DNA from: Glycera tridactyla
Lineage: Eukaryota
Direction: 5' to 3'
NCBI GenBank assembly: GCA_965644265.1
Contig: OZ286462.1
Span: forward strand, 38,192,001 to 38,256,000
Length of the DNA: 64,000 bases
Shown: one piece after another, positions 38 to 30,128 of the stretch
Layout: the number at the start of each line of letters is the position of its first letter
Numbering within the stretch: the stretch's first letter is position 1
The notes under the pieces: model-generated
What the model saw: the letters and a program-made list of their open reading frames with translations, nothing else
What the model was told of the DNA's origin: nothing
Databases searched by the model: none
Program-made: the position numbers and the translations under genes

Positions 38-289
38 CTCCAGCTCCATCTGGGTGAGAGGTGTAACCGGTGGTATGGCGGATGGTGGATTGGTGGCGCT
101 CCGGGCCTGAGCAGCAAGATTGTTGGCAGATGGCGCTGCAGTGTAGCGAGGCGTCTTCGTGGGAGATGCCGTATAACGTGGATAATCCCAAGGTTGAACC
201 CACGGTGCCTTCACTCTCTCATCCTCGGACTGTGACCGTATGGGAGATGTCGTCTGACTGGATGGTGCACTTCCGCGACTGCGTGGATC
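38..289 (-). CDS. Internal coding exon, Ser/Pro/Thr-rich (DPRSRGSAPSSQTTSP...PWVQPWDYPRY...PVTPLTQMELE); probable protocadherin cytoplasmic exon
   Basis: Acceptor ccacctttttgatttcag|GAT at 289 and donor GAG|GTAGGA at 38. 252 nt, open only in phase 0-0, GC/CpG-rich like the Pcdh exons. Assignment to the protocadherin is inferred from phase and composition only. Confidence 0.7.
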
Positions 290-2884
290 CTGAAATCAAA
301 AAGGTGGAAGCACATGAATATTTATGAATCTGGACATGAAATCATGATTTCCATATGATGTGGTCCCAATTCTTCCAGATTTTCGAAAATGAGAAAGTCA
401 GGCTGAATGAGTACAGTTGACAAGTGGACAGCTCCTTGATTGGATGAATGGAAACCTGTTTCTCAGGCTGAGTTCTTGCCCAGGTCAAATCCTGCATTAT
501 ATAATTTTCACCAAGGCAACAAATATAAAACTCATTGTTCGGAGAGTCTTTCTCTCAAAGCTTTCAGAATTGTTTTGAAATGTCTACAGTGTGAGTCATG
601 CCTGTCCAGTCTTCACTGGTGTGGATCTCTCTCTCCTTCTCAGCCCTCCCACCCTCCCTCCCTCCCTCTCTCTCTCACTCTCTTTCTCGAGACTTCAAAT
701 TGGATCCATCTTTAACTCTTCAGTTTATTCTATAAGCCACCTCTTGACCAATCCCTTGGCTTATCGCATCAAAACTCAATGTGTGCACAGAATGATAGGG
801 GAGAATTTCCACTCAATCTGAATACACTCGAATGAGAGCAGCCGCTTGCAACTGATTTTTTTCAGGGGAAATCATGAAATAATTCCAGTGAAGTACGATC
901 AAGTTGCATATCTGATTAGTAGGCAACAATCAAGCTACCAATCATCAGTGGCATCTGGTGGTGGGATAGAGTACTGCAAGGTTAGTTTTATTCAACCAAA
1001 ATACTACATTGATATGAATGAGGTTTTTTTTCAGTGATCCCGATCAATAGGCATTCATCTAGTTTATAGGCTGTTTGGAGGTTATACTAAATAACCCAAA
1101 TGTTGAGGTTATGATAAATGACCTAAATGTACAGTCTGCAACCCTGACCACTAGCCTGGTGCCCAACACCAGGAGAAATCAGGTCAGGGGCCCAGATCAC
1201 CAATGGTGCACATATACTTGAAAGGACATTTTACTCTCAGTCACCGTTGTATTCTCGACCTATAACAGTCTGGCAGGCTAATTGGGGAAAAAGAATTCCA
1301 CATCAAAGTTACCACAATTGATGAAAGAATATGGATAATTTTGGAAAGCTTCTCGATTTCTAAATTGATTGAGACTGAGATATGTTCATTTATAAATGTC
1401 ACGGATATACATCGGTGAAAATACAGATAATTAAGTTTATCTGTGGCACAAAGACCATGGCCTGCACACAGATTGATGTTGGTAGTTCTGGTGTCATATA
1501 ACACATTCAATAGTATTATGGGCTTCCTACATTCCGAGAAAACTCCACATTCATAGCTGAAAACACCAAACAGAATCAGCAATTTTCTTAATGATTCAAT
1601 CTGAGCCCAATATTTGTATGCGTTTGTGACATGTTGGTCACAGAGAGAGGGCACATGGCTGATGTACACTGATATATCCCTCATAAATGAATGACATGCC
1701 TAATCAAAGACCAATGTATGACAAATGTTGTGGTCTTACTCTCTGTTGGATATGCTCCATGAGGTCATTCCTGCCTCTGGGAAGTGCGTGTGTGTGTGTG
1801 GGGGGGGGGGTGCATGTGCATGCATGTGTGTTGGACAGGTGTTTTTTGAACTTGTTGGGTGCAATCTTGATCGGCACTCTGGTGGGAGAAGTTTGAGTCT
1901 GTGATTCCCTGTTCCACCACCAGATGCCAGTGATGAGTAGAAAACGCCAATTGTTGTTTCAGTTCTGACCATCATCATAGGAGTGATAGTTGCAACTGCT
2001 GATAGAGACAGACAGATGGATGAACAGATGGACAGATGGACCGACAGACTCTGTAGTAAGCCTAAGTTTTTGAGTAGTTAACCTACTTTGTCTCTCACTG
2101 TCAGAGTCAGTGCTATCCAGCCAAGCTGTCTGCCTGTCAAACCAAAACCATCATGCTCTATTTTTCTCCACTGCAACAAACCAACCAATTGATGCCCCTT
2201 AATCTATCCATAAATCCAACCATCCATCCAACCATGTATCCATCCATCCAGCCTGCCACTCACACAATGTAATTCTTGTAGAACATCGAAATGAGTTAGG
2301 ATAGCACACAAGATTGTCATCCTATTATAATGGTACCCAGGTGAGTCTCAGCTGGGTTAAAGACCTGCATCTCCCCCCCCCCCCCCCCCCCACACACACA
2401 CACATGCACTCACACACATTTACCCACACTGAATAACATCAACCAACTTAGACGAATTGTGATTACTCTTTTTATTAAAGAAACACTCCATAGAGAGCTT
2501 TCACAAAACAAACAGAAACACATATATTTACTGATCAGTGGTCATTATATTCATATGATGAACAGAATTTTCAGATCAACGACAGGCATAAAAAACACAC
2601 ATCAGTAGCCTAAGGCTACCCCAAAATGGCAGTGCATGAGGACCAACAATATATATGCTGAACCCATATTCAATGTATGTATTGTCTATGACACGCGTGA
2701 TGGAAGACCTGGCCAAGTGGCAACCAAAAATGGTATCACAAAACAGATAGCCTCCCGCCAGATGTACTGTATATTTGACAATGCATGATAAAACTGCCTT
2801 CTTTGAAGATGGGTCGCACAAAACAGTTTGTCTTCTCAAAGGATCATTTAATGAGTATTCTTATGCATGTGAGCATAAAATTTG

Positions 2885-2887
<3 letters not shown>

Positions 2888-2968
<81 letters not shown>
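2888..2968. repeat. (TG)n + (GCGT)n microsatellite
   Basis: Seen directly. Confidence 0.98.
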
Positions 2969-3119
2969 ATGTAGAGTGAAACCTGTGATGAGCGAGCCCC
3001 GTTGAGATCCTCACTTGTTTTGCAAGACCACAAGTTCAGAACTTGATTTTCTATTTGACAAAGTCAAACATACTGGTACACCCAACAAAAGGATACCTGT
3101 CATGATGGATCTGGGGTGG

Positions 3120-3254
3120 NNNNNNNNNNNNNNNNNNNNNNNNNNNNNNNNNNNNNNNNNNNNNNNNNNNNNNNNNNNNNNNNNNNNNNNNNNNNNNNNN
3201 NNNNNNNNNNNNNNNNNNNNNNNNNNNNNNNNNNNNNNNNNNNNNNNNNNNNNN
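3120..3254. other. Assembly gap (135 N)
   Basis: N run. Confidence 1.
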
Positions 3255-4148
3255 GCATATCATGGATGTTGCAAGTGTCACGGTCATGATAAACATCCAG
3301 TCATTGAATTGGTTAAAAAAATCCATCACAACCAAAATTATATATGTTAAATGGACATAAGTGAATACCACACTGGAAGGTGCAATAATTAACAAGTGTT
3401 AATTTCACACCAAGAAATTCACACAAGTATGTATATTAGTACACAGAACATGTAACAGCCAGTACCCCCTTATCCTTGAACCTACTAAAAACACAAACAT
3501 AAACAAGAACCCACAAATATTGTGCGGCCACCTTGAATAGCATCATAGGCACGAGCATGACTGCAACAATACAGGAATGGAGACCTTAATAAGTTGATCC
3601 ACTCAGAGAACTGGGTATGCAGTATATATGGATCTGAATATACTTGAACATTGCTAGGACATGTCCCCTAAGATCATACAAGGCCTAGCAAAATTGCACT
3701 GAAATCAGATTACTTTAAAAGTCTTTATGAATGCTTTATATTGCTTTATCAGCTGACCAGAATCAGAAATATTAGAAACTAGCCAGAATGGCAAACAATG
3801 ATAAGTAGAATCAATTCACTAGTTGGATCATCAGTTCGAGTCATTTACAAGAATTGAAATCAACACCTTGAAATATTTATTGAACCGTGTGCAAATTGTC
3901 TTTTCTATATTCTATTCAATTGCTATGATATTCTCGGTTCAAAAAAGTAAGAATAATTCTAGCCCCATACCAGATGGAGGAATTATTTGACACTTCAGTG
4001 TCAATGTAACATCTCTCAACCATGAGGCTGGCCCCATAAATTTACACTCCTGGACAGGCAGTTCCAGCATGAATCTTTCCTTTCTTCTCGAACACAACCC
4101 AGAATACCAGATCAACAACATGGACAAACAAGTGCGCCGAGAGATCTC

Positions 4149-4190
4149 TGAGAGGAAGAGAGAGAGAGAAAGGGAGAGAGAGAGAGAGAG
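4149..4190. repeat. (AG)n tract
   Basis: Seen directly. Confidence 0.95.
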
Positions 4191-4229
4191 TCAGAATCAG
4201 GTTACTAAAGCCAGGTAGGTGTGTGGTCA

Positions 4230-4700
4230 AATCATACGTAAAAAGAATCAGTCGAACCGTCGTAATTTGTGCTCTCCACCTCTGCTCGAGTGCTGATCTG
4301 ATTGGCTGGTTTTACACATGCTATCTACAACTTCATTCATGAATCGGCGCAGTGATCCACCAAACCTGGTAATGAGGTGCGAGCAAAAAGCACTACTTTA
4401 CTCCCCTACAAACGATCATATCGAGATTTATGCATACAGATAAGACAAACGGATGTCGAGGAATCCATTCAGAAGATCGTTTCAACTGTGTGTTTGATAT
4501 TTCTCCATGAAACCTGGTAATGAGGTACGAACAAGAAGCACTACTTTTTTAAGTGGGCGTTCCCAAATAGCTTGATTGACAGGCATTTACTGTTTGTGCG
4601 TAGCTATACATCTCTTAGCGGTGGTATCTGTGTGCTTCGGTGATTGGCCACAAAAACGAGTATTGAGGGAATTTCTTATTGCGTGATCGCTACATTTCCT
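4230..4700. promoter_or_regulatory. CpG-containing promoter-like segment with two ATTGG (CCAAT) boxes and a 38-bp direct repeat
   Basis: ATTGG at 4301 and 4643. Repeat aaacctggtaatgaggt.cga.caa.aagcactacttt at 4362-4399 and 4510-4547. Local CpG density is higher than in the flanks. Confidence 0.3.
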
Positions 4701-7239
4701 CAAATTGCCATTCATCAGATCAGTGAATCATCTTAAAATTGTGTCAGGTTACATCATATGTACCTTTCACACATCTACGATCATGATTCACTTGAAGATA
4801 TCAGCCTCGAGAGTCAGAATCGACATAAAAAGGCATTTCAAGGAGAGAGGTGGTAGCATGGTGATCTCCAACGGAGATCACAAAAACTACCTATCACCAT
4901 CATTCTCCACAGCCGAATGCCCACAGACACATGGGTCAAGCCAAGCTGTGACATTGATAGGCGCTACTCATTTCCATGACTCACTCATACTTTTCCATCA
5001 CTTTTGCTTTTCCTAACCTACCCCTACTATGAACAGCTACTGTATTGCACGAATGTATGTTCAGATATTTGTTCCATAGATCATTTACAAGCTTCCAGCA
5101 GAAAACATGATTTCAATCAAGACTTTCAATCAATGTACAAAAGTAAAATTCTTGCCTCACATAATAATAAGACCCAAGACCTTCATTTGACATTGGTGGT
5201 GAGAAAAATGAAGCTTCAGGAATTACTCATTTCCCAACCGAGAAGTCTCCCACATATCATATTCATCATATGCACAAGCAGAATATAACAATAATATATG
5301 AACAAAGCAATGTAAAAAAGAAGAAGCTGAAAATTATCTACAATCAGCAGTGATATTCACAACTTTTGTGCTTTCTCTTCTATGAAGTAGCATTCAAATA
5401 ATATACTCCCTCATTTTGAACAGTCTGTGTCAATGAAACTATGAGAGTATACAGAGAATTCAACCCCATACCTACCATGACACATCCAAAAATAATATAC
5501 ACATATTTCATAAGATCTTCCTCATGTCAGTTGCATTACGTAACCTTCAGGTTTAACATCACGTCAGCTCCATTTGTGCTATGTTGAGACGCACATGCAA
5601 TGGGCATGAGTGGGATCATTCAAGACCCCTCCTTCTGGGTCACTAACAGAAGGCGGATAGAAATTATGAAATTCAGACACTGGCAGTCTGATTTCAGGGT
5701 TTCTCCATTCAGGAGAAAGTTGATTACTCTCAAAAGACCTTATACATTACATCAATAAGGATACATTTTATTGCAATTATGGAAATATATATGTATATAC
5801 ATTACTTATAAACTAACAATAGAAGCAAAAACATGTAAAGCTATGATTGCACTAGTTTCTCAGATCTGCAGATTCATCACAAAACCCCAATCATTCACTC
5901 CAACACAATGCATTGATTATGATAAATTACATGAGGGCAGTAAGTAACATTTTGGATGATAAGGCTCATCATTCATATAGCACCTGCTTTGAATCTAAAC
6001 ATACGTTGACATTGTGAAACATACGGCACATATTTGTGTGATGTTGTGGAAATATTGGAATAAAACAACTTTCAATTACCATATTTTATCGCCATACCAT
6101 ATCATTTCATGAGAAACTGCATAGTCCCAGCCAACCCTATTAGACATTGAATGTTACCAAACCATATCAAGTCAACACAGAACATTTTCATGTCGTTCAT
6201 TATTTGACACTTCCAGATTGACTCTGTTATGGCCACTCAATCATTTACCATCTTCACATGGTGCGTGACATAATATGTTGACCCTAGAATATTACACATG
6301 AGATAAAGAGTCGTCCTCTCTCATGTGTGTAAGAATTTATTGGGATGAAATTCCTGATCGGTTCCATCAGGGTCCAGAGCAGGGATCAACAGTTGTTATT
6401 CGGCTTGAGTATCATAAACAAAAAGAGTGCAAATACATCTCAGATCACCAATTATCCACTGAGGACTCATAGCAGGAAGAGTGGTTGTTTAATGTATCTT
6501 TTTCCTCTTCTACAGTAAAGTTCCCCCACATATACTATGTGGTCTCGAATTTCTGAAACCATGCTCTGGTTGTGCATTTCATGTTTTGATTTATGATGCA
6601 TGCTCACTCATTGACATGCAGGAAATGCTTGCCAATGCACAAGCAAGCTGGGAGGAGTGAACACACTCGAAAACGACACTGCTTATGCTTTCTACAAATA
6701 CTTGTAATCAACACACACTATCCATGGTCTATATACAATAATACTCAACCTGCCATATAAAAGAGCATCATTCTGATCACATGATAGTATACAATTCATT
6801 TCAGCTGCCTAAGAAAAGCACCATCAGATATGATATGTCTCATATAATATAGCAGTTCATGCCTTGCAAGCAGTAGTCCATTAAATCCTGGAATAAGTGA
6901 ATGATCACTGACCAATTGATCAATCATATATAAAAGCAGATGTACATCAGTAATGGAGTTCAAATGCTGGCCATTTCCACTGATATTAAGATAAGACTAA
7001 GCCAATGAAAGGTGAGAAGTGTGATACATAGGCAAGCATAGAGTAGCACCTATTCAAAAATGTGGTGAAGATATGTCTGTCCATCATATTCAATCAAATT
7101 TGGAATTTTGATGGATCACTCGACGATACCATATCCCTTTCCATCTCATTGTAAACCTATACAAAAATAAGTATAATGACCCAAAATTCAAGCTTCATAA
7201 GAGCTCAACACTACATGAAGTCCTAGGTGATATATATCA

Positions 7240-7481
7240 CTACACCGCGCCAAAATGTTCGGTAGAGAATGCAAGATCAAAGATGCTGTACAACTGCTCC
7301 TGGTCGCGATTCAGATTGAGTGGAAGTCGGAGCTGGTTGATGCAAGTGTTGCTGCTGGGCATTGCCATGCCCTCTTCAAATATTATACATGGAGGACAGG
7401 TAAATCCAAGTACTGGCTCCGACTCACTGCCAGTTGCCAACAGAAGAATCTTCTCCAGGTTTATATCTCCTCTCTTACCAC
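7240..7481 (-). CDS. HECT unit terminal exon: C-lobe with catalytic Cys (SNTC) and stop
   Basis: Acceptor tctgtttattgcag|GT. Encodes ILLLATGSESEPVLGF...PSSNTCINQLRLP...EHFGAV*. AATAAA occurs downstream on the minus strand at about 6336-6341 and 5767-5772. Confidence 0.92.
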
Positions 7482-10400
7482 CTGCAATAAACAGAATGAA
7501 ACCAATCAACATTTGTCAGAGCGAGTAATTCATAGGGATCAGGTCATTCAAATACCCAATATGCTGAATACAAAGTGGAATTCTGGTCCATCTCTGATTA
7601 GAAAATGGCAAATAAAGTAGTCAACTGGATGGCAGCAGACAAATACATACAAAGTAGCGGCAAATACTTTTTGTCAGTGATTGCTGGTTTGATAACATGG
7701 GAGAATCCAGACTCTTACATCTTTCCAAATATAGTTTCAGCAACAATACATGTGGTTTTCCATCAATGACTGGTTTATTGGATGGTTTGCTATCTCATGA
7801 GCAACAGCGAGCTATATTGTGATGACGAAGAAATAAGCATGAGAGGGGCATTCAAAAATACTCCTTCTGACCCCAAATAGAAGGTGATATATGAATATCA
7901 CCAACACTTGATTTTTCATTTTCAATATGCATCACTAAGGCAAGCTTTGATGATTTCCTCAGAATGAAAGCTGAAATTGCTCACTAGTGCATGAATCCAC
8001 ACTATTTTAATGCATTCCTTGGAGATCAGCATATGAGTTATATTCCAAAACATCATGTTTTCCATCCATGAACATATGCTGCTGAGTGATCTGCTTCCAA
8101 AAGGATGTCGTATGAAATTGACATGAAGGAGTTTACCAAGTGACTATTTTCTGTTCAGAATATTTATTTCTATGCATCTACTTACATGTGTATTGTGAAT
8201 GTATGATACACATGCCATTCCATTGTGTGATTCACCCCATTTCAAAAGGCTGAGTTAGATCCATAATGAGGGCGTGAAACAAAAACCCCAGCTTACCTTG
8301 CACATCCTTGATGTACTGAAGGAAGAATTTGTAGGAAGCTTCCTCTTTCTGTCTTTTGTTATTACCATGCTCCGAGAACTTGGGTTTCAGTAGATGAAGT
8401 AGTTTATTCCTTGATAATGGCTGAGCAGCTGTCCTGATCAACAGGAACTCCAGTACCGGTCTTTCATTCAATAACTACAACAAACCAAGAGTGGGGATTA
8501 CAATAAACTGATACACTCAAATTGAGAAAGCAAACAACAGAATACAATATATTCAATACTAAAGTAATGAATCCATGGTGACAGGGTTTCTTCATTGATA
8601 CATATCAGCATTTGCATGTGACATATAATTCATAAAATTCTAGCAATAGAAGATTGGTTATGCAATATTAGTATGGAATTACAAGTTGAAGGATGACAGA
8701 ATGGAAGCAAAGTTAATCGCGGCCTATGTCCTTCTTTGGAATCTACCAATCACAATATTCTAATCAATGAAAAGACATTTGACAGAGTTGTGGATTCCAC
8801 AAATGCTAGTCTATAATTGTGAGATAAAACACAATGTGGGTGCCAACCAATTTGTCTTGAAAAAGTCTTATCTCTCATTAAATTCCAGCTATTTTAATTC
8901 AATCTGTCTACATTATTTAGGATGAAACTGATACCCCAATTGCATTTTCATATGAGTGCTGAGACAGTTAGGAGAAATATTCATTACCTGGATGATGCCG
9001 AGTTCATTGAGGCCCTCATGTAGCTGCATCTCTGCTGGACTGAGTTCAACAGTCAATGGGTTTCGAAGTCGTTTGATCAGATTTTGGCTCAGGAAGCATG
9101 GCAGTGGTCCATTTTGCAGAATGCTTGCAGCTGTGAACAAAGGCACATACAGCATATCAGTCATTTTTCTCTTGCACAATCTTGAAACAGCATTTCATGT
9201 GATGATGAGTATTTTAGACTGAATAATATTCCATTCTTTTTTTCTCTGGCTGCAAACCTTCATTAAATTCTCATTCTACCAATACAAATATCAACTTCTT
9301 GAATGCTCATCTAATTCAGCACATTTGTCGTACTTCCATCTCCGAATTTCTGAGGAGAGAATATTTTTGTGAGTTATTAACAATGATTTAGTCCAGCTTC
9401 TCTAGCCCATTCTCTAAATAACTCTTCAGAATAAAGTGGGTTTCACCTTGAAGGAATACATAACCGGACCATACTACTTTCTTGCAATGATTTATCATGA
9501 ACAGAGGGGAGATTAGTAACTAGATATGATGATGGCAAATTGCCATCAAAATTTTTAGGAAATATTTGGCTATTGCTTGGAAAGAGAGTCACAAGTGTCT
9601 GCTCAATCAAAAAATCTGATTATGGATTTTAGATAAGACACAATTTGGTGTAAGAATAAGGTACACTTTTATCCAGTGTGGTTCACGATGGATACTTACC
9701 CATGAGTCTCCCCGCAGCATAATAGTGTCGTTTTTGAAGGCTACCTGGATTATCACAAAGTGTGTACCCTTCATCCCCTTCAATGAACAGTCTCTCTTGA
9801 ATGGCTTTCAGAACCAGATGAAGGAATTCACGGCGAGGCCCACCATAATCAGCTGCTTCCTCTCCATAAAATATGACCTCTAGTGGTACACGTAAGTTAA
9901 TCTCCTGCTGCGTGAATTCATCCATTGCATCCTCAAATATACGATATCGGGAGACCCGAAGCTGAGACGTCTCACCCTCAATACTTGAGGAGTCATCAGA
10001 CAAGTCCAAAGGACGTCCCATCATGATTTTTTGCTGATATATGCGAAGAATTTCAACTGGATCATGTATTTTCTTTGTTTCTTGCACTGTCTCTGCCACA
10101 CACATGAGGACAGATCGTAAGTTCAAGCTGCTGCTCGAGGATGTATGGGACACATTTGAAGGAAAGTCACTCTTAATCATCTTGGGGCTGGAAGATGGTG
10201 ATGATCGTGGACTGTGAACATCGGGTATTGGAGCCAGACTAAAGGATGTATCTCTTGGCAGGTTTGGTGAGGTAGAGCCAGATGACACTCCTGTGTCGGA
10301 ATCTGGAATCCTCTGATCACTTGACACCAAACTGAGTGATGATACCTCAGAGATTGTTTGTGACCTTTCAAAGAAACCCTCCGATAATCCTGTATCAGAG

Positions 10401-13400
10401 TCCACCAAACTTCTACGGTGCAAGGATGTGTGTGAGTTGGTTGGTGTCCTCTCATTTTGACCACCTGGCACTCCATTAGTATATCGAGAAACTCTACTGG
10501 GCGGTCGCCGGATAGGATGGAATGTTCGCAGTAAACTGTGTGGATTTATGACTTCAGAGTCAGAAATACAGTTAGAATTACTTGCAGTCCGAAACACCCC
10601 AGTATCTGAATTTCGGTAGGAAGGACCCCGGGTGGGTGAGAGCACCAAATCAGAGTTGCGACGTGGACCATATCCAGAGTTTCTAGGAGGAGGCCGCCTA
10701 TACACAGGACGATTCTGCCTTCCAAACTGAGTGACAACTGGTATGTTTGAATTATCCGTATCAGCATCAGACTCTGTCATACTGGAATCGACTGGAACAA
10801 TGCTCGGCTGACTCATATATGAGCTGCTAGAGTCGAAACTAGCGTTGATCATCCCAGGATTGGATGACGTCATACGGTGGCTGTCATAACTGATGGTTGT
10901 CATTGGCATCATCAGTGATGATGCTCGACTGATGGCTAGGGATGATGAACGACTCGGGGCATTCGGTCGCCCTGACTGATGGACAGCCATCATAGGAAGC
11001 TCCTGAAACAGGGGAAGATCAAATTAAATCTCAATTTTTCAATATCATATGAGTAATAATAAATGTGATCAGTACCCAATTTGATTAGTCCAAACGGGAT
11101 GGTACAAATTATATTCACTAATAATTGTGTGGAAATCTAACCAATGGCTTGAACACAATACGATCAAATGATCACATGGGTCAATGCATCGGCACACAAA
11201 ACAGCTTGTTACCACACAGGCAAGGCAGTTGATGCCATCCTGGCAGTTGATGCCATCCTGGAGATCCAGGTTATAAATCACAAGAATTCAGAAAATTTCT
11301 GAGAATGCAACTTGAGCATCCACAGGTGTGTCATGAAACACAATTTCATTCCAAACAAGATTGATATTGTACATCTTCATACAATCTCTACAGCAAACTC
11401 TTCCTTTTTTTCTGGCTCTCCCTCTGATATAAAGGTGAAAAAGCATGAATCACATGGAAGTGTCGAGCTGATCATGAATACCATAAATTTGATGGTTCCA
11501 CCTTAAGCGATATCCAATGAAAACACTTGGGGGCACATCATTTCTGTCAATGTCACATGACAAGCGAAGGTGAGTTATGAAAGCTGTCATTCACACCAAA
11601 TTTGATGCTGGTTTTTAGTGAAACTCTTCTGTGAATGGTTGCTCTTTATTCACCTTGAATTGATTTGCTTGTCTAAGACTTGACACATCATCCTTAACTG
11701 AGTTCACTGATAATATCCATGAAAAAAGACCGCCTTCAGTAGCTTAGAGATTTGCCTTTATAGGGATGTGGTCTTTATGAAGAGGTCATTTACTGTTCAA
11801 AATACAACTATGGTCACAGATCAGCTTTATAGAGAGGTGGTCTTCAGAGCAGGTTTGACTGTACTTTACAACTTCATGACATTTTCCCCCCAAATAATTT
11901 CTTGAATTTGAATATCTGCTTCCATTATCTGAATACCATTAAGTCACCGGTGTGGCCCTTGCTTCTATAGAATTCATCAGATCCTAATTGTTTTGCCATA
12001 GTGAAATATTCACCCTGGAGTCACTCACCATATTATGGCTGGGTATACAGTCCTGTAGATGTTTCCTGAGTGAATCAGAGGGCACATTGACACCACAGTG
12101 GAAGCATGGCTTCATCTCAAGAATCGACTCTGAGCTCAGCTCTTCATCCATAGCAAGGTCCTTCTCCTTTGGACGGATGTAGACTGTCCCAGCTGGCAAA
12201 AGTCGCAGTTCTTCTGCTGATAGACAGCCATCATACACAAACTTGAGATCGGGGTTCTCCGAGTTGTTATCTTTTGCCAGAATCACTATACCTCCTCCTT
12301 CTTGCATCTTGGGAAAATGCCTGAAGAAAAAAATGAAAATCGAATAAATTTCAATGAAAACATTTATGATGTTGTGTACCTGCATTTTTATCATTAATCC
12401 CAAATCATCAAAGAAAGGAGAACATTCTCTTGCAGCAGCTTTTACTCCTTGGAGAAGTACAATACATGTGGGAGACTGTCACCATCTCATTTGAGAGACA
12501 GCTTTGTGGTCTCTCATTACAGGTTTTACTGCATAAATCAAATAGAAAGAAATCATGTCAAGAACCAAATGGTATGCATCCACTGTCACCTCTCACAAAA
12601 GCAATGAAAATGCTATGAAGATTTCTTTCACAAGAACAAGTGCTTATTCATCATGGATCTGGATTAAAACCATCACTCACAGTGTAGTTTTCGGCAGAGA
12701 AGTGCTTCTTCATTTCTCTCTCCTAATTTTGCTTTCCCACTCAAATTACCATTTCTATACAATTACCTTACATGACCCTGCATACTGACAGCTCAACACA
12801 TGAGCATCTATCATGTTAGTGCCCTCTAGCATCTCAAACAATGTCCTACATGGGGCCATTATGGTTGCAGCAGGTTTGGAAGACATCTGGAGGCAAACAC
12901 ATGTACTACTGGGCTTGGTCTTGCAGTGAGTGCATGTCCACAGATCAAGGTGTTATTGCATCTCTATTTCTGCACATCCCAAGCAACATCCATGAATCAA
13001 ATTGAATATTTTGGATATTTGAAGGTACATAATTCAACTATTGAAAGTATGAAATTCCTCTCTACTCTAGATGCCAACCATAAGTGGTCTCTCTACAAAA
13101 AGTGGTTCTCAAAAGAGTACAGACTCCCCAAAAAGGTTATAATGAACCATCCTTGAGTATGAAAATACAGTCACAATTTCTATTCAGCAGCATGCAATGT
13201 TTTTGTTGTTTTTGTCACTGCAAAAATATCTATAATAAATTCAGGGATGTGATTAATTAAAACCAAAACCCTGAAAACCTGACTGGAGGAACTTTCTATC
13301 AAGATTTTATGGGCCAAGAAACACCAGCAACTGCCAACAAATGGCTACGATTGATTTATCTCCACTAATTCTGGTTCAATTTCCAAGTCCACAATAATCA

Positions 13401-15076
13401 ACATAAAATTCTCACTCAGAATATATGCATGGAGTGCTGCATTCATGATAAAATATATGCAGAAATCAGGGGATATACAGAACAATCGGATCCCTGTCTG
13501 ATTGAAAGTTTTACTGTGATATGCAAAAGATACTCACATCGAGATGACTTTGTTCACATCTCCAGCACTAGCATAGTAAGGAAATGCTAGGGTCTTCAGT
13601 CCAAGACCGTTGGCGAGGAGTAAACAATGTTCGCCGGCCGTCGGGACAGTCTTGCTGTGCGTGTATGCCAAACTCATGACAGGCTTCAGCCAGGCACGAA
13701 CTGCAACAAACAAGAAACAAGGATGCACATCAGTTTCCCATCATTCTATTTCAATCGATGTAGAAATCAAATCACGTAGATTGGAATTAACAATTAACTA
13801 AATTTTCGTAATCCATTTTCTATTTCAGGCGCAGCCAGAAACTGATATTGTGGAGAGGGTGATTCATAAGCCTGTGAGGAGTAATCAGTTTAAACTGTTC
13901 AAGATGTCCCTTCTGCACCAAGGCCACCTGCCTATAACGACCACTCAAAACGACCAAAGCATGATTGTGATCAACGAACTAAAATGCCTCTCTACAAAGG
14001 CCACCTGACAACAACGACCATTCCTCGTGTGACCCAGAGAGATCCAAATGTATCTGTGATATGTGAGCATATTTCCGTGAACACATTCTCATCATTTGTT
14101 TGCAAATAGTGGAACTTGTCCGCAACAACCTGCGTTTGTTGCAATGAAAAGTGATCATCATAGAATGGCGGTCTGTGTAGAGAGGTTGTTGACTGTGGGA
14201 ACATAATATCATGATCACAGCTTAGGATAGCCTCGGTAGGCTGGTGGTCTCTATATATAGGTGGTCTCTCAAGCAGGTTCCACTGTTTGCCTGAGACAAG
14301 CATGCAGCTGTTTTGAGATAATTTTAGACAAATTTTAGCTGCTCGCCATTCACAGGTACAAATGTTTTCTCGATTGAGAATTTGGGGACATGCTTACAGT
14401 CTGATGAAATGATGACAACGTTCTTATCAGATTTGTGCATAAACGTAAATCAGGAGTTATTTACAGTCAGACCTACTCTATGCCGACAACCAGGATGACA
14501 GACTCAAGTGCATGCTTAGAATCGGTTCATGCTAAGTTCAGGTAGATTGAAGTGAAAATAACCTGGTGGGATACCAGCCAGTGGGAGAGAAGACAAATAG
14601 ACTAAACATGGGGAACATCAATCAATTTTTTCTCAAACTATCACACTAACTGAAAGGATTGCATCCATTATGGTGTTAATTGCTTCACTGTGACAAGGTG
14701 TGCCATCATCATCAACAAGTGACTTGTACAGTGAAACCTGCGACAAGATCCCCTGATGAGAGACCCCCTCCTATGGGAGATCACCTCTTTTGAAAGACCA
14801 TTTTGGTGACATTTAGAGTGGTCTTTTGTTGCAGGACTCACTGTACCCCAGTTGACTTATGCTGGCCTTTTCAAGCAATTTTTTTCACATTACAATCTGT
14901 TATCTGATCAAGGCTACTGCATAGGCAGTATTATTCATTTTTTAGAAAAAGGTTCCCCATGGATAAGTTTCAGTAGAAGTACCTGGTGGTGTATGTATTC
15001 AGATTTACTACTCACCTCTTGATATGGGATTCCTCCTCATATATGGTGCCAGGTCACGGTTACGTGATCGAGTCGC
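7240..15076 (-). CDS. G2E3-like HECT-type E3 ubiquitin ligase (7 exons, 2382 nt including stop; 5' end not identified)
   Basis: Seven exons with canonical GT-AG sites and consistent phases (0-1-2-0-1-0-1-stop). HECT motifs: GEEAADYGGPRREF, YYAAGRLMAASILQNGPLPCFL, catalytic PSSNTCINQLRLP and C-terminal HFGAV. The N-terminal GLG...FPK..GGG...YIRP region and C-x2-C...H-x3-C finger match the G2E3-like family as I recall it. Confidence 0.88.
8297..8474 (-). CDS. HECT unit exon 6 (LLNERPVLEFLL...YIKDVQ)
   Basis: Acceptor tcttggtttgttgtag|TTA and donor CAA G|GTAAGC. 178 nt, phase 0 to 1. Confidence 0.9.
8988..9130 (-). CDS. HECT unit exon 5 (ASILQNGPLPCFLS...LGIIQ)
   Basis: Acceptor cctttgttcacag|CT and donor CAG|GTAATG. 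143 nt, phase 1 to 0. Confidence 0.9.
9700..11002 (-). CDS. HECT unit exon 4: long Ser/Pro/Arg-rich low-complexity region plus start of HECT N-lobe
   Basis: Acceptor cttcccctgtttcag|GAG and donor ATG G|GTAAGT. 1303 nt, phase 0 to 1. Corresponds to the 436-aa ORF. Confidence 0.92.
11725..11861. mobile_element. Partial MITE (right end)
   Basis: Ends agagaggtggtcttcagagcaggtttgactg|TA. Confidence 0.7.
12029..12320 (-). CDS. HECT unit exon 3 (HFPKMQEGGG...YIRP...CFHC..HLQDC zinc finger)
   Basis: Acceptor catttttttcttcag|G and donor AAT ATG|GTGAGT. 292 nt, phase 2 to 0. Confidence 0.88.
13538..13700 (-). CDS. HECT unit exon 2 (VRAWLKPVMSLAYTHSKTVPTAGEHCLLLANGLGLKTLAFP...)
   Basis: Acceptor ttcttgtttgttgcag|TT and donor TCG AT|GTGAGT. 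163 nt, phase 1 to 2. Confidence 0.85.
13886..14285. mobile_element. Longer degenerate MITE of the same superfamily
   Basis: cagtttaaactg...caggttccactg ends, with subterminal gaccac/gtggtc blocks. Confidence 0.65.
14729..14843. mobile_element. MITE in a HECT-unit intron
   Basis: TA|cagtgaaacctg...caggactcactg|TA. Confidence 0.8.
15016..15076 (-). CDS. HECT unit exon 1 (ATRSRNRDLAPYMRRNPISR), 61 nt, phase 0 to 1
   Basis: Acceptor tttcttttt ctgtattccag|GCG and donor AGAG|GTGAGT. Its phase matches the next exon. Confidence 0.7.
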
Positions 15077-18000
15077 CTGGAATACAGAAAAAGAAAAACA
15101 TTAGCTAGGTGCATAGAATTCGTCACTACATTCTGTCTAGCCAGATGTCACCACAGCTGCATATATTGCTCTTTTTTTTAATACTTAATCACTTTGACTA
15201 CTATATAAATTATATTGTTTTACAAAGTCTTTTAATGTGTTTTTTCCCCAGGAGTTGAATTATAGGAATGATCCATCATCCAGACAATGTGACTCTCATT
15301 ATCACAAGCATTTTTTGACTATGACTAAATTATGGCTAAATTGGTTGAAGAATGACATCAATCTGCAAAAATGTGATAATTTATGCAGCAGAATAAAACA
15401 CCTGATATCAATCCATCATGAATTCATTACTAAATTATGAGCCATTCTTTACACATCCATTAATATTTTTCAGCCAGTTGCTCATATCAGGTATATTTCT
15501 ATAATGGGTAAAATCTATTGTGCATGATGTAATCTGGATTCCATACACACAAAAACTTCATTCAGTGAAACGGCAAAAAAGCATTCATCAGACTATGCCA
15601 GAAAAGAAAGGTGCCCTGCAGTACCAGTCTCTTGTGAGAGGTGGTCTCTCATCGCAGGTTTCACTGCATACGCACAAATTGCCCAAAAAAAATGACTGCC
15701 ATTTTCCAATCACCAGAACTTCAAATGAGAAGAAAAGTTGTTAGGAGTCTTACAGATGTGTTCATATGACTTTCAAAATCACATTCAGTTTCAAAGGATC
15801 ATGAGATTATTAGCTTTCAGGATGGATTTATACTGACTTTGTCAGTTATGAACTCATCCATACTTCAAGTCTGAAGAGTTCAATCTACAATGAATATATG
15901 CTGAATATAAGTACAATCATCTCTGATAATTCAACACAAGTGACCATATATTCATACAGCTGAAACTTTAAAAGGTAACACAAAGCAAGAGAAGAGGAAA
16001 CTGAAAGATACCAAAAATTATATCATAGTAGGCTGGTCTAATGAATGGGTGATGATGCACAAAATTCAGCGTAGATATGGCCAATGATTCAGACCCTTTT
16101 TTTGATGATGTCTTCTTATCCAAATATCTTTTTTTTTCTTGCTCTTATGAACAATATGTGCAAAACAAAGCAAAGGTTGACATGATATACACTGCATCAA
16201 ATCAATTTATTGTCAGCTTTCTGTTTCATTTCTTTGATTCAAGTCACATCGTTTGCAAAATGCTTGAGATGAAATGAACTGAACACACAGCTACACAGAG
16301 CAACTTCAAAGGACTTGGAAGCATAGGCAGCAGGGAGAAGCAGGGAAGGCAGTGTGCTCTACAGGACCCTACTCACACATGCGAAATAAGCAGTAATAGT
16401 AGCAGGGAAAGCAGCAGTTGATCACAGCAGCAAGCAACACTCGATGTAGAAACACATTTAGCAGATGCAAATAATAGGAACAACATCACAACCCTCACTC
16501 GGATTACCATATCACCCTCAACAGGGCAGATCAACTTTTTATTCATGAGATTTACCATAATTTCTCTAATGAAGACCAACGAAAATGATCTTTTTTTAAT
16601 ACAATGGCCTAAGCCTGCTTGAAATGAAAAATTGAAACCCATCAATATCTTAGATATTTTTTAATGAGGTGGCAAATTTTCGACAGAAAAGATTTCTGAT
16701 TACTTCATGGCTCATCACAGCCACCTTCATAATATCTTGATAAGAGCAAAGCTTGTGTTATAAGAAGAAAGCTTATCTTCTATACAAACTACAATGAAAT
16801 TCAATGTAATAACCAAAACAGGTGTCCTAACAACATCAAATGGTCACCTATTATTATATGATCCCGTATCACAAAATGAATTTTGCGACGAATTTGGAAC
16901 AAAATATTGATATTTCAGCATACACAATACAGATGCAGCTTATTCAAGAATGGAGAAATTCATGTTCTGGAGTAGATCATGAATGGTGCTACAAACTCTC
17001 ATATTTTCCTATGACACTTCCCATCTATGAAGGGTGCCTAGATTCCTACAAAGGATACACCCTCTCAAGGCTCCACCCAAGCACAAAATTTGAGAATGAC
17101 TGATTGAGATCATAATAGCTTGTGACGACCAGGAGGCCAGATGGATAAATCAATCAAACTGAATGCTTGTCAGAACAAATATATCACAAAACCAATATAT
17201 TTATCATTAAGTTACATAAAAAGATGAATAAATAAATAAATATATATACATGAACAAAAATTGAAAAATCCTGAAAATCACAGGCGGTGGTCTTAGACCC
17301 GACTCGATTTCTTGTAGATGTTGATTAGACATAGACTAGGCACTAGAAAGTTAGTCTAGATTGTGATAACGCTTTCTATAACCACTGTTTAGCTGACACC
17401 CAGGATCTTCTTTTTCTGTGGGGAATTATGTAAGATGAAAGCAAGTGTGTGTGTGTGGTGCGGAACAGTGTGAAAGAAATACCGAATATAACATACAGAT
17501 TGAATTTCAGCACAGTATATGCTTTCACACTGGGAATATAAATCAATGTAATTACGAAGTGCAATTTGGTGAAATTACTGAAACCGGGTCATATGATGGT
17601 GATGATCACTATGTCATTCATGCATATTCGTCAGTGGGGTGTCCTCTGGTTTTCCAACTTCAAACTATCATCCCTAACTGGCAAGCCATAGACAATTTTA
17701 GAATATGGTCGATGAAGTTTTTGTCCGATTTTTTGTGACAAAGATCAACTAATCCTAGGAATGAATTTGCGGCGTTCTGCGCGGGCATTCGACTTGCCAA
17801 CTTTTTTTATTATGAGAAAATCAAAAGTTTTCAATTCACAGCTGAAGCTGCATATAACTACCTCGAAATGAAACAAATATAATGGTCATCTTTGCCAAAC
17901 TCAGCTTTGGAGGTAGCACTGCATTCAAGAGGGGAAATAAATTGTGTAGCAGAAATCTGCATTCGCGAATATTCAGTGCTATCAAATGGGGCCTGGTTAT

Positions 18001-20803
18001 GTATATCTGAACTTGACTATCAAATGAGGTCACAGATTAAGGGAGGTCCACATATGAGTTAAATGGAATTAAACCCTGTTATGTGGGTAAATGCAATGGG
18101 AAGCAATTGTCCCTTTTGATATAACAGTGATGTCAATAAATGGGTTTCCGTGAATAGTATGCATTGAATCTAAGACAGCTAATTGTATTTTATATTCAAA
18201 TATTTACAGGGGATTACAGTTCCTGCCTCTGTGCCAAAACTGCATGTGTGCTACAAAAGAATAACAATTACAAAAACATTGTGGGATGAATTCAGACTAG
18301 TAACATGAGATTTGGTCCTACTCACTGAAGAGTATGATTAAGGCAAATTTTGGTTTACCTCAAGTCTCGTACCAATATTGTGGTTCATGCATCACCAAAT
18401 GTTGTGGTGTTTGGTGAATGATAATGGGTTCTTATTCAGATATTACAGCAAACCTTTACTCCTTTCCAGGAATGCATGTGTGTCATTTTGAATCAAGAAT
18501 AAGCTGTGGTAGGTTCTAGCATTCATTTTAATAAATAGAAGGAAATTGAAAGAAGAACCAAATCTTGGATACTTCCAAATATATAGCAAGAAACAAAATT
18601 GCATCAGAATACAGACAGATATGAATAATCACCTTCATTGAAGGAATAAGATATAAAGGAAAGAACAAAAATAATTGGAAGCCAATCAAGATAGGGGCTA
18701 GAGGTGATCTACGTAGCACATAAAGCGATCCTATTCAGCGGGCAGACTGAGATCATGCAACTGAGAGTGGGCAAAGGAGAACAACATCTAGGCTGCATTT
18801 ATTATATTGATACTTACTTTGTCACTATGGAGGATGGGTAAGGGCCTTGTGTCAAATGTACGATGAAAAATCCAATGACGCCTCAAAAATGTACGGAATG
18901 ATGCGAGGTAATAGTGTCTATCGATTGCTTCCACAGAAGCTTGTTAAAATGGATACAAACATGAAAGTGGTTTAATAAGTGCATGAATATAATATCTGCT
19001 CCTGGGAATATATTACGTGCAACAATATATGTGATTTGGTGCCACCCTCTCTCCTTTTCACCCTGTGCTAGTTGTCACCATACCAAAGACACTAGAGGGA
19101 CCTCTCTACGCTCTTTGACCATACTTGGGTCCTAGCACCTAGTGGATCAATCCCACCAACAAGTGTCAGTTTGATAAGTAATTGGATAGCTCTGTCAGAG
19201 GTATGGTGTACATATCACACATCAGCATGTCATATATGAAGCAAAGGTGAAACAAATGGATGGTTGCGTCCATTTGTTGAGAAACACAAATCATTTTTTC
19301 TGGAACTATATTCCATTTGTAATGACTCAGATGATTAAATTCCCACTTCATCCCCAATATTTGTATGTGTGAATCATATATGCTCCAAAAGCTAGCCATC
19401 CATCACCTATCCAATTAATTCACATAATATTTGGTAATGAATCAATTGAATAGGCCAGTCATCTAAAGAATACTACAATTGGATCATCAGATGCAATATG
19501 CAAGTCTACCACGGGTGATTCTGACAATTTCAAAAAGCAGAACATGAGTGTAATATTTTGTGTCATTCTATGAATGTAATGTCACCAAAATATCTACAGG
19601 AAACTCAGAATGAAGATATTCATAAAACAAATGTCTAATAATTTATAGATTCTGATATACAGATTTTTTTAATTTGAAATGATAACATTGATATAGAATC
19701 ATCATTGCAGAGATGTGAGAAATATGAGAAACATGAGAAAAGTATTAAAGATTTCATCTCAGATCTCTATAACTTTTGCACCATATTGAGATTATAATTT
19801 CATGATATTTAAGTCATCGCATTATGTCAACCATGGTACGGAATGAGCTTCAAAAATTAAGCTCTCATATATGTGCCAAGCCAATTGAATCATTATCCGG
19901 GCAAAACAGCAATGACCAAACTTGTCCCATCAGTATGTAGGGAGCTCGATGTTAAGAACAGCAGCAGGGATAAAGCAAAGCAAAGCTTCAGAAATGTCAT
20001 GATATGCAGTTAAGACAGCAATGAATCCTTGCTTTCATATCACAGAAAATGTAAGGATGACTGCGATCATACACTGATACCCGTGAAATATGTGAACTAG
20101 ATGGACACCAAATTCATATTCGTATTTCTATTTTGATCTCTCCCATGAAATATCATTTGTCTTCATAGTCATTTGTGATTGGGCAAAACTGGTATGGAAC
20201 CAAAAAGAGGGTTTTAGTCTGATGATAGTTGATTATTCACAAGGAGATCCATTATCCACATATATATATATATACATATATGATGCAAATGATAAATAGG
20301 TTATTTAGTTTGAGTGAAATGGTAAACCATCCTAATGTAAATGTTATTCACTGAAATGTACATAATGGTAGTACTACACATTGTCTACAAATCTGATGTG
20401 AGTGATATCTGATATATATATGTAATGGTTGTTATTATACAGTCTCAACACCTCTGATGTAAGTGATATTGACAAAACATACACCAAATAGAACTCTGGA
20501 TTACACAATCTAACTAGGATGATAGTATTGGGAGTATAAATAATGCCACTCAATCAGAATCCCATATGGTTAAATCTGACAAGACTACCAACAGTGTCAT
20601 GTAATCGATTTCCACACAACTCATGTGATATGCAGGGCATGAATGAATGTTTTTTTTTTCATATAATCGTCCAAGTGATTGTATTCTCATCAGAATTTCA
20701 CAACTTTTGGAACTTGTTTGCAAGATGTTTTGAGGTGGCACACAATGTTAACATGTTATAATATCTACATTTTTCTATATTATATCATGAAAATACAACT
20801 CAC

Positions 20804-22722
20804 CTCAATGATGGGCTTCTCAATGGCTTGTGGCCACATCATGTGATAGTCATCCGTCTCTCCAGGTGCCCGTCCAATGTCCACCACAAACTTAACCTCC
20901 TTTTTCTGTCTCTCACTATCGGAGAGTATCACGTGACCATTAGGTCTGTCATCATGATACTCATCTTTACTCAAGTTATCATCTGTGGAATCATCACGAT
21001 CTGTAGTCACTCTCAACGGATACTGTGGCTTTTTGCGATTCGCACCTCCTTTCCGTCGTGCTGTGACGACAATCGCGGTTATGATGATCGTAAGTATGAT
21101 GAAGGTAATGACGACAATGAGAATGATGAAACTGGATCCACTGAAGAAGTCACTATCTGCTCGAGCTTGTGGTGAAATCAGCGTGGTCGTGATGACGATA
21201 TTCAAATCAGCAGTTGACGCTAAAGCAGGAGTTCCACTATCATGCACTGTTACTTCCAATCTAAAAACCTCATTATCTAGTCCACTCAAACTACTGGACA
21301 AAATAATTTTCCCACTGTTGGGATCAATGGTAAAGGTGTCATTACCATTTGAAAGGCTATGTACTAAGTAGGAATTGGGACCTGCATCGTTATCATAGGC
21401 ATCAATTTCCCCGATGATACTTCCGACTTTTGTTCCGATGTATACATTGATTGTATTGTTGTATCTACTCGGGAAGTTGATGACGGGCCAGTTATCATTG
21501 ATATCCTTGATAGTGATAGTTACATTGACACGGTTGAACATGTTGGTATATCCTTCATTACTAGCCAAGGCGACAAGGTGATACACAGCTATCACTTCGC
21601 GGTCGATTTCAGCACGTATTTTGACCTCACCAGTTTGTTCGTCAAGTGTGAACGGTATGGGATCTGTGATTGACGGGTCCCACAAGTATGTGATCTGGCT
21701 GTAAGGTGCAGTATCGGGATCGACTGCTTCTATAAAACCTAACGATTTACCGATCTCGTCATTCTCAACAACTTGGAAGGCATACGATGAATTTAGAAAT
21801 CGGGGTTTGATGTCATTAGTATCCATTATGTGAATACTGAGAGTGACTGTGGTGGTCTTCGCATAATGTCCTTGATCCGTCCCCGTTACCAACACCTCAT
21901 ACTCTGTTTCCACCTCATAATCGAAGGCCACTTTAGTTGTAATTACACCAGAGATGGAGTCACAGTACAAGATTTCCGTATCAGTCTCATTGAGCAAGTG
22001 ATACTTGATCGCAGCATTTCGACCAATATCGCCATCTGTCGCATTCACTCTGGTAACTATCGTACCTGGCGGCTCATTCTCGTATAAACTCACAGTATAC
22101 AAATTTTGGAAGAATACGGGGACAAAATCGTTATCATCCAGAACAGTGACCGGTATATTGATGGCAGATCTCCGCTGTGGTATTCCTCCATCGTGACATG
22201 TAAGGATGATGACATACGAATCCTGCGTCTCACGATCCAACATCACGTTGGTTAGGATCGTTAACTCGGTGTGTTCATCGTTGAGATAATTGATGTAAAA
22301 TAAACCATCCAGGTCAATGTAGCATGTCAAACGACCATTTTCGCCCCCGTCTGGATCATCGATGGTGACATGAGCAACAAATGCGCCCGGTCGCATGTTC
22401 TCTTGAACTTCGGCTCGCCCACTCGTACTCATCGAATTCAGAATGATCTGCGGAGTATGATCATTCACGTCTTCGACAGTTACGATCACCTTGGCATAAC
22501 TCGGTAGGGAGTTGGGCCCCATGTCCGTAGCAATCACGCGAAACTGGTAGTTGTTGCCCTGCTCATAGTCGAGGGCCAGCTTGAGATATACGTCGCCACT
22601 GTTCTCTTTGATCCCGAAGATGGTGAGGTACTCTTCTGGTGTGTCATCAGCGAATGAGTAGACTACCTGCCCACTGGCCCCCTCATCGGGATCATATGCA
22701 TTCACCGACAAAATTGTGGTAC
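20804..22722 (-). CDS. Pcdh: Protocadherin exon B: EC3-EC7, TM, juxtamembrane tail
   Basis: Acceptor cttcttgttgcag|GT at 22722 (phase 1). Donor GAG|GTGAGT at 20804 (phase 0). 1919 nt = 2 + 639 codons. Confidence 0.95.
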
Positions 22723-25700: not shown

Positions 25701-26272
25701 ATGATGTGAAATATTTGATTCAGTTGTACTATTACATTCATGGGAATATCACATGTTTCACTCATCATACAAATAGAGTCACGATCAATCACTTGCGACG
25801 TCCGTAACATCCCATAGGGGGAATCGATTGCGAACTTGCCAATGTTTCTACTAGAGGCCACTTGCGGTGTTGGTGAAAGTTGAAACTGAAGTTGTTCAAT
25901 GATGGAACTATTATATACACTCCGTAATAATGAGTCATGAGAAACATTTCCTATGACGAAATTAGCAGCGGACTGCTCAAGTAGTTGGTATTCTAACTGT
26001 GATTGAATTTCGGCTTTCACACCTTGTAAAGATGCTAGTAACAGTATTGTCCATACATGAAGTATCCAGAGTAACCGGTCTTTCCAAGTGTGAAAACAAA
26101 TGTAGCATTTTTTGCTCCGTCCATGTTTTATCACTAGGTGATGATGATGGTGGCATTTCTGGGAGTATTTCTTGTTGGTTTTTGTCACCCCGTGCATCCT
26201 GTTACAATGGCATGTGCTAGAGGTGTCATTGTAGCCATCCATTCTCCCTGTATTCCCGTTGTCTAATGTCAT
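20804..26272 (-). CDS. Pcdh: Protocadherin, 7 cadherin repeats + TM + start of cytoplasmic tail (two exons, 973 codons visible; continues through a phase-0 donor)
   Basis: ORFs 25265-26383 and 20780-22813 join in frame at CCA CGT G|gtttgt...cttcttgttgcag|GT ACC, giving EDTPRGTTILSVNAYDPDEG. Six DxNDxxP-type linkers delimit EC1-EC7. EC1 has the protocadherin DRxxxC-x5-C motif (DRDSICMMSETC). A hydrophobic signal segment (LLWILHVWTILLLASLQGVKA) and a TM (FIILIVVITFIILTIIITAIVVTA-RRK) are present. The start Met at 26272 is inferred. Confidence 0.95.
22821..22952. mobile_element. MITE (partly deleted) in the protocadherin intron, about 100 bp from the 3' splice site
   Basis: TA|cagttgaacc...gactg|TA, with repeated taaagaccacct blocks. 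Same family as the 36644 copy in reverse orientation. Confidence 0.8.
23488..23692 (+). repeat. Unclassified interspersed repeat with decayed coding character (copy 1, in the Pcdh intron)
   Basis: Aligns at roughly 80% (estimated by eye) to the reverse complement of 61555-61774. A short third piece lies at about 23860-23885. Confidence 0.8.
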
Positions 26273-26322
26273 GTTATCTACGAGTACATTGTCCACAGGC
26301 TGTTGATGGTCACTGCCGGCAT
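25273..26322 (-). CDS. Pcdh: Protocadherin exon A: N-terminal leader, signal sequence, EC1-EC2, start of EC3
   Basis: Acceptor tttttctgtctgtttcag|ATG at 26322. First in-frame ATG at 26272. Donor G|GTTTGT at 25273/25272 (phase 1). Confidence 0.92.
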
Positions 26323-29767: not shown

Positions 29768-30128
29768 NNNNNNNNNNNNNNNNNNNNNNNNNNNNNNNNN
29801 NNNNNNNNNNNNNNNNNNNNNNNNNNNNNNNNNNNNNNNNNNNNNNNNNNNNNNNNNNNNNNNNNNNNNNNNNNNNNNNNNNNNNNNNNNNNNNNNNNNN
29901 NNNNNNNNNNNNNNNNNNNNNNNNNNNNNNNNNNNNNNNNNNNNNNNNNNNNNNNNNNNNNNNNNNNNNNNNNNNNNNNNNNNNNNNNNNNNNNNNNNNN
30001 NNNNNNNNNNNNNNNNNNNNNNNNNNNNNNNNNNNNNNNNNNNNNNNNNNNNNNNNNNNNNNNNNNNNNNNNNNNNNNNNNNNNNNNNNNNNNNNNNNNN
30101 NNNNNNNNNNNNNNNNNNNNNNNNNNNN
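29768..30128. other. Assembly gap (361 N)
   Basis: N run. Confidence 1.

Follow-up and report, generated by a model that had tools for sequence, protein, structure and literature searches.

Nested genes lie within an intron of a host gene and can be read from either strand. In Drosophila, 71 % of them are found on the strand opposite to that of the host (PMC3814207), whereas in mouse and human the bias in orientation is only slight (PMC11694760). Same-strand nested genes in Drosophila are mostly simple: 72.5 % have a single exon and the others a median of one intron, a scarcity that has been put down to selection against mis-splicing, and nesting of a multi-exon gene in phase with its host is the very configuration argued to be selected against (PMC3814207). 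Drosophila host genes are also enriched for highest expression in the brain (PMC3814207). Here we describe a 64,000-nt stretch of the genome of the animal Glycera tridactyla (called the window; G000:C10:38192001-38256000, in a genome of 2.04 Gb) in which a seven-exon gene for a HECT-type E3 ligase probably lies, in sense orientation, within one intron of a protocadherin (Pcdh) gene. The original prediction for this stretch started from the view that nested genes are usually antisense, which holds for the fly and hardly for the two mammals.

Transcription of a nested gene can force early termination of its host, as in the case of H13/Mcts2 (PMC13309782). H13/Mcts2 and similar imprinted loci are cases in which the nested gene controls polyadenylation of the host (PMC13309782; Wood 2008 and Cowley 2012, cited in PMC11694760). 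An active nested gene that brings about early termination and a different host C-terminus is also the class of mechanism first proposed for the window. At these loci, however, the host transcript stops at a poly(A) site in the intron, before the nested gene is reached, and does not splice into that gene. Catalogues of same-strand pairs exist for Drosophila (PMC3814207) and for the two mammals, mouse and human (PMC11694760); these pairs have in common a complete coding gene within one host intron, transcription in the same direction and an unusually long intron, all of which recur here. What distinguishes the window from the Drosophila pairs is a nested gene of seven exons with consensus splice sites, the first of these exons matching the host donor in phase. 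The layout is thus of a known kind, that of a same-strand host/nested pair, in the rarer multi-exon, sense-nested configuration.

On the host side, the nearest described relatives are vertebrate protocadherin-8 and -18, which presumably belong to the delta-type protocadherins. They combine a cadherin ectodomain, one transmembrane (TM) helix and small downstream tail exons bearing the motif DSG[KR]G.S[DE], a plan that the window gene shares. In contrast, the ectodomain of the window Pcdh is only ~30 % identical to theirs, and for two of its three tail exons, T1 and T3, vertebrates offer no match.

The host protocadherin gene and its phase-0 donor

Every gene relevant to the nesting is carried by the minus strand. 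Among the named protein matches, the best ones are from molluscs and annelids. The host gene and its predicted intron consist of the following elements, in window coordinates unless otherwise indicated.

25273-26383, minus strand: Pcdh exon A, encoding the signal peptide and the first of the cadherin repeats, Pfam Cadherin_2 and Cadherin, start codon not fixed
20804-22722, minus strand: Pcdh exon B, five cadherin repeats, TM helix and juxtamembrane segment KKEVKF...WPQAIEKPIIE, Pfam Cadherin E=4e-78
290-20803, minus strand: predicted host intron between exon B and T1, ~20.5 kb
3120-3254, no strand: assembly gap (135 N), in the predicted intron, separating T1 from the 3′ end of the HECT gene
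38-289, minus strand: predicted Pcdh tail exon T1, 252 nt, 84 codons, phase 0-0, stop-free
G000:C10:38190551-38190686 (L003 8686-8551), minus strand, outside the window: Pcdh tail exon T2, 136 nt, phase 0 to 1
C10:38188407-38189248 (L003 7248-6407), minus strand, outside the window: Pcdh tail exon T3, phase 1, 279 amino acids and a stop

Exons A and B together encode at least six cadherin repeats (Pfam Cadherin, Cadherin_2) and a single TM helix, the hydrophobic stretch FIILIVVITFIILTIIITAIVV of exon B. Exon A is also backed by tblastn with the homologues P0001-P0012. The donor of exon A is CGTG/GTTTGT, in splice phase 1 (a slash marks the splice boundary). Exon B is 36-38 % identical to its counterparts in P0002 (loci L015/L016) and P0004 (locus L017).

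At its 3′ end, exon B reads ATCATTGAG, followed immediately by gtgagt at 20804 (GAG/GTGAGT, phase 0), and without splicing at this point the Pcdh frame would run into a stop 7 codons on. The homologous position holds GAG/GTGAGT in L008, GAG/GTACGT in L009, CAG/GTCAGT in L015 and CAA/GTAAGT in L017. The predicted proteins of the closest homologues continue past it as '...[IL][EQ]-V-[SR]...' and then degenerate into junk, which is what read-through of GTnAGn looks like. Because a phase-0 donor is conserved at the homologous place in these four other loci, we regard 20804, whose sequence is also a strong consensus, as a real donor.

The chromosome-scale contig C10 carries at least 20 further Pcdh paralogues, 34-39 % identical and each a single open frame of 900-1000 codons, which are dispersed over ~100 Mb and on both strands (e.g., 51200834-51202738, 44351284-44353146, 39733974-39735728 and 38028709-38030418). 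Among the Pcdh genes seen on this contig, only that of the window has an intron within the ectodomain. With one Pcdh in the window and its paralogues scattered in this way, a clustered Pcdh array with shared constant exons was ruled out.

Tail exons downstream of the donor

The exon at 38-289 had been singled out as a phase 0-0, Ser/Pro/Thr-rich and CpG-rich exon that could take the Pcdh donor, and its sequence agrees with the description. It is open over all 84 codons, Ser, Pro and Thr make up 34 of the 84 residues by hand count, and it has a GC content of 58 % with 17 CpG dinucleotides, i.e., a CpG observed/expected ratio (o/e) of 0.82 as compared with 0.37 for the whole window. It is entered through the acceptor ...tttgatttcag/GATCC (AG at 291-290), preceded by ...cctttttgatttcag, and left through the donor GAG/GTAGGA (GT at 37-36).

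Inspection of the adjacent DNA for further tail exons with conserved Pcdh CM motifs had been suggested, and two tail exons were found in the 30 kb beyond the window start, T2 at 1.35 kb and T3 at 2.8 kb past it. T2 encodes MHEMLGMLGKDGDSETGSVTDSGRGPSEEGD... and includes the segment TDSGRGPSEEGD, of the DSGRGxSEE type. The C-terminal part of T3 reads ...TSTSGSYVLDSSDAYRQ...FLV before the stop and contains a conserved TSGSY. The phases form an unbroken chain from the Pcdh donor (0) through T1 (0-0) and T2 (0-1) to T3 (1 to stop). Neither T2 nor T3 matches a Pfam family. The DSG[KR]G.S[DE] motif of T2 is also present in the tails of annotated protocadherin-8 and -18, in the Capitella cadherin P0036 and in P0073; we take this DSG[KR]GDS-like motif to be the CM2 motif of the literature. 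P0073 is one continuous open reading frame in a contig assembled from a public run; in it, a Pcdh ectodomain passes at the homologous point into a tail with the motifs of both T2 and T3 (DSGRGCSEE, TTTSGSY). Relatives of T3 with 34-46 % identity occur in three further assemblies, one of which is that of the closest Pcdh homologue, P0001, and its phase-1 acceptor is identical in both loci checked (L014 and L015).

The identity of T1 is decided by the orthologous loci. In L015/L016 and L017, three contigs of other animals, the Pcdh exon, a T1-like exon and T2 follow one another on a single strand within ~9 kb, the T1-like exon starting 2,911 nt (L015) or 2,266 nt (L017) after the Pcdh exon. It encodes 83 amino acids in L015/L016 and 78 in L017, is likewise in phase 0-0 and extends from NPKAHSTALG to SSPIAPLTEMELE/GT. 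The window exon (DPRSRGSAPS...PVTPLTQMELE/GT) aligns with these exons end to end at 32-33 % identity. The C-terminal ends are the closest part, PVTPLTQMELE/GT here as against PIAPLTEMELE/GT in L015/L016 and L017 (E=8e-5 for the final 11 residues). Because of this end-to-end alignment, exon 38-289 is best identified with the orthologous Pcdh tail exon T1. Its neighbour T2 is 77-84 % identical between the window gene and L015/L017, where it measures 139 nt, runs from phase 0 to 1 and has the same ATGCA.GAG start, and L015 in addition has a T3-like terminal exon (phase 1, ...TTSGSY...). The flanks of P0003 (L008) and P0001 (L009) are uninformative, with neither a tail exon nor a HECT exon within reach.

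For the T1 peptide, whose comparison with protocadherins had been suggested, there was no significant match among 120 Pcdh homologue proteins and no Pfam family; at the level of DNA the phase 0-0 exon was matched in the contigs of L015/L016 and L017. T1 and T3 are each single-copy in the genome, a search for paralogues being empty in both cases, and for T1 the scarcity of other relatives would fit a fast-evolving disordered linker.

In the orthologous loci (L015 8606-8854, L017 14796-15029), the T1 exon has a stretch of PPPPPPP as well as an insert rich in Gly and Ala, and it is conserved only at its two ends. This pattern points to a disordered spacer that bears short docking motifs.

The HECT gene within the predicted intron

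Between 20803 and 290, on the strand of the host, lie seven HECT exons, all of them AG/GT-flanked, with two downstream polyadenylation signals.

15016-15076, minus strand: exon e0, 61 nt, phase 0, open from its first base, first ATG at 15040
13538-13700, minus strand: exon e1, phase 1 to 2, alternative ATG at 13677
12029-12320, minus strand: exon e2, phase 2 to 0, UBZ4-like zinc finger CFHCGVNVPSDSLRKHLQDC (12040-12100)
9700-11002, minus strand: exon e3, phase 0 to 1, Ser-rich linker of ~300 amino acids, then the start of the HECT domain
8988-9130, minus strand: exon e4, phase 1 to 0, tblastn match to P0122
8297-8474, minus strand: exon e5, phase 0 to 1, tblastn match to P0121 and P0122
7240-7481, minus strand: exon e6, C-lobe with catalytic Cys (SSNTCINQL), 3′ untranslated region to ~6320
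6336-6341, minus strand: AATAAA, likely HECT poly(A) signal
5767-5772, minus strand: second AATAAA

From 15076 to 7240 the exons make up one frame of 794 codons, closed by a TAG at 7242-7240; they were searched singly, and the reading frame was followed through each exon and its split codons rather than on a joined model. The donor of e0 is GAG/GTGAGT in phase 1, and e0 itself is unique DNA in the genome, just as the start of the HECT domain in e3 is single-copy. Exon e6 matches the Pfam HECT family (PF00632) with E=1.5e-5 and 25.3 bits against a cutoff of 23.9. Exon e3 is 46-49 % identical to the HECT-bearing proteins P0121 and P0122 (E=1e-25 to 3e-32, tblastn). Exons e3-e6 align exon by exon to these two PF00632-bearing proteins, with the cysteine of TC[IC] in register, and the catalytic Cys stands 33 residues ahead of the stop, close to the ~35 residues from the C-terminus usual for a HECT domain, which places the product among the HECT E3 ligases.

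The finger in e2 has all four ligands of the type C-x2-C...H-x3-C and gives no Pfam match. Its best match in the PDB is the UBZ of RAD18 (E=0.0094 over 23 residues only), and it fits the RAD18 UBZ4 pattern C-x2-C-GVN[IV]P-x5-KHL-x2-C, a short match at E ~0.01. Taken together, these features describe an intact predicted E3 ligase of 781-793 amino acids in which a UBZ4-like finger is followed by the Ser-rich linker and then by a small HECT domain. Its closest relatives, P0121 (Dendronephthya gigantea) and P0122, are small free-standing HECT proteins whose HECT domain has a similar length and is 42-50 % identical per exon. In comparison, the window protein has ~470 extra residues N-terminal of the HECT domain, encoded by e0-e2 and the linker. 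No cadherin was found near P0122 (L020).

The HECT unit has its own ATG, stop and AATAAA, its relatives are free-standing, and it may be transcribed independently of Pcdh. Two candidate start regions can be named. One is a TATA-like tatatag at ~130 nt before e0. The other is a unique stretch, mildly rich in CpG, whose end AAA/GTAAGT at 18818 would be the donor of a candidate non-coding exon. The two genes also differ in base composition: CpG o/e is 0.82 in T1 and 0.95-1.03 in the other Pcdh exons but only 0.27-0.36 in HECT exons e2 and e4-e6, a contrast that may reflect a difference in germline methylation or expression between host and nested gene.

The Ser-rich linker of e3 contains the motif [DN]SDTG[VL] three times at 10250-10620 (minus strand), as NSDTGVFR, DSDTGLSEG and DSDTGVSSG, and these repeats loosely resemble the DSGRGxSE of the Pcdh tail.

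A probable same-strand host/nested pair and its alternatives

The arrangement of exon B upstream and of T1, T2 and T3 downstream of the HECT unit is that of a gene lying wholly within one host intron. The order, phases and motifs of these exons are conserved in L015/L017 and, in part as a continuous coding sequence, in P0073. According to the original prediction, all of the HECT unit, poly(A) signals included, sits in a single same-strand Pcdh intron; the comparison with L015/L017 supports this, as it identifies exon 38-289 as the tail exon that follows next in Pcdh. Most likely, donor 20804 joins T1 at 289, and we consider it probable that the window holds a same-strand host/nested gene pair with the HECT gene inside the Pcdh intron.

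The following scheme would account for the layout. The host would be a conserved protocadherin, exons A and B providing the ectodomain, the TM helix and the juxtamembrane part and T1-T3 the cytoplasmic tail. The intron between exon B and T1 would have grown in this lineage from ~2-3 kb to ~20.5 kb; at present it is 7-9 times longer than the orthologous introns (2,911 nt in L015, 2,266 nt in L017), with the reservation that 20,514 nt is only an estimate since the intron contains the gap of 135 N. Because HECT queries matched nothing in L015/L017, the orthologous introns included, the HECT gene would have entered, or survived only in, the intron of this lineage. The Pcdh pre-mRNA would normally be transcribed through the HECT unit and spliced from 20804 to 289. 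The HECT gene would have a transcription start of its own, at the TATA-like site by e0 or at the exon ending at 18818, and cross-splicing between Pcdh and HECT would presumably be a minor by-product.

Some observations weigh against this interpretation. The 84-aa peptide of T1 has 0 matches among 1.84 billion representative proteins. The likeness of T1 to the orthologous exons is modest, amounting to 32-33 % identity and one block of 11 amino acids. The assembly gap separates the HECT gene from T1. Finally, e0 combines a strong acceptor with an open frame in the phase of the Pcdh donor, as a true alternative 3′ module would.

This last point leads to the alternative that survives best, although we regard it as unlikely: donor 20804 could choose between T1-T3 and e0-e6 as alternative 3′ modules, the latter choice yielding an in-frame TM cadherin-UBZ-HECT fusion terminated by the HECT poly(A) site. 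This is the alternative-last-exon switch of the original prediction, which the sequence no more than permits. Its attraction lies in e0: no acceptor in the locus has a stronger polypyrimidine tract than that of e0 (15076), and the first ATG of the exon stands in a weak context (T at -3). A join of 20804 to 15076 reads in frame through the whole UBZ-HECT open reading frame, e0 being in phase 0 and opening the 794-codon frame. Joins to e3 or e5 are likewise in frame, while those to e1, e2, e4 and e6 stop after 4, 17, 13 and 6 codons, respectively. There is also a precedent, in H13/Mcts2, for a nested gene that alters the choice of the host 3′ end (PMC13309782; PMC11694760). However, a match in phase is expected for one exon in 3 and 12 open codons with a probability of ~0.46 at this base composition, so that by our own estimate the properties of e0 would arise by chance in ~15 % of cases. 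Moreover, the orthologous introns are without HECT, and the conserved Pcdh therefore needs no HECT tail; the HECT relatives are free-standing proteins, and T1-T3 are still intact and conserved. A HECT domain is found in none of the listed Pcdh homologues, which measure at most 1,172 amino acids, a length window that would miss a fusion.

Appreciably less probable still is a simple tandem arrangement, in which Pcdh ends near 20780 by read-through or with an unseen small exon and T1-T3 fall in a transcription unit of their own, which has its start downstream of HECT. Such a unit would be in keeping with a T1 peptide that lacks database relatives. Against it stand the conservation of the donor at 20804 in five lineages, the exon order, phases and motifs shared with L015/L017, the presence of the T2 motif in annotated protocadherin tails, and the fact that T1 opens with an acceptor and not with a start codon. 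The sole promoter-like candidate for such a unit is, moreover, a repeat.

4200-4800, no strand: copy of a CpG-rich interspersed repeat (5,537 first-look candidates; 40 scored copies 82-90 % identical)

A gene starting near 4.2 kb, to which T1 might have been spliced instead, had been put forward as the counter-case to nesting. As the CpG-rich DNA in question (4.2-4.8 kb) is an interspersed repeat of high copy number and not a promoter, this gene was ruled out and the counter-case fails.

That the gap at 3120-3254, which does separate the HECT gene from T1, joins non-adjacent stretches and makes the nesting a product of scaffolding is hardly credible, given that the single-copy T1-T3 follow Pcdh in the correct order, orientation and phase as in L015/L017, that the Pcdh above them is the one whose juxtamembrane end matches the P0001-P0004 group, and that the gap lengths in the window are unequal, as for spanned gaps.

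Continuity across this gap is supported indirectly by the gene order and orientation on either side, which agree with those in other species, and the gap is crossed by no exon and no reading frame. The window has four gaps in all, of 135, 361, 169 and 225 nt, lengths as expected for estimated, spanned gaps.

If a same-strand host/nested pair is accepted, the locus is a clean, well-bounded case of the class that is rarest among nested genes, one that combines several exons, sense orientation, consensus splice sites and a first exon in the phase of the host donor. The host is an adhesion receptor of neuronal type, in which the tail (77-84 % for T2) is better conserved than the ectodomain (~38 %). 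The locus would be well suited as a test of how a host pre-mRNA deals with the splice and poly(A) signals of a gene nested in sense within it, whether by avoiding or by exploiting them. Should chimeric transcripts exist, the locus would encode a receptor-E3 ligase fusion, and if their formation were regulated, cell contact would directly place an E3 ligase at the membrane. We know of no described cadherin-HECT fusion. Should there be no chimeric transcripts, the pair would be an ordinary host/nested pair that arose by expansion of the intron in this lineage.

Other features of the window

The three gaps other than the intronic one (29768-30128, 48460-48628 and 53044-53268) lie outside the nested locus. 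Positions 1-27000 of the window, including the repeat at 4200-4800, gave no match to Rfam. Along the Pcdh gene, CpG o/e is 0.8-1.0 in the coding exons (20804-26200, 38-289 and L003 6407-7248), while the introns of the same gene have values of 0.14-0.20. Short pieces resembling short interspersed elements, with the core AAACCTG.(A/T)(A/G)TGAG.GACCAC, are found in introns at 2960-3010, 11850-11880, 12500-12540 and 13990-14300.

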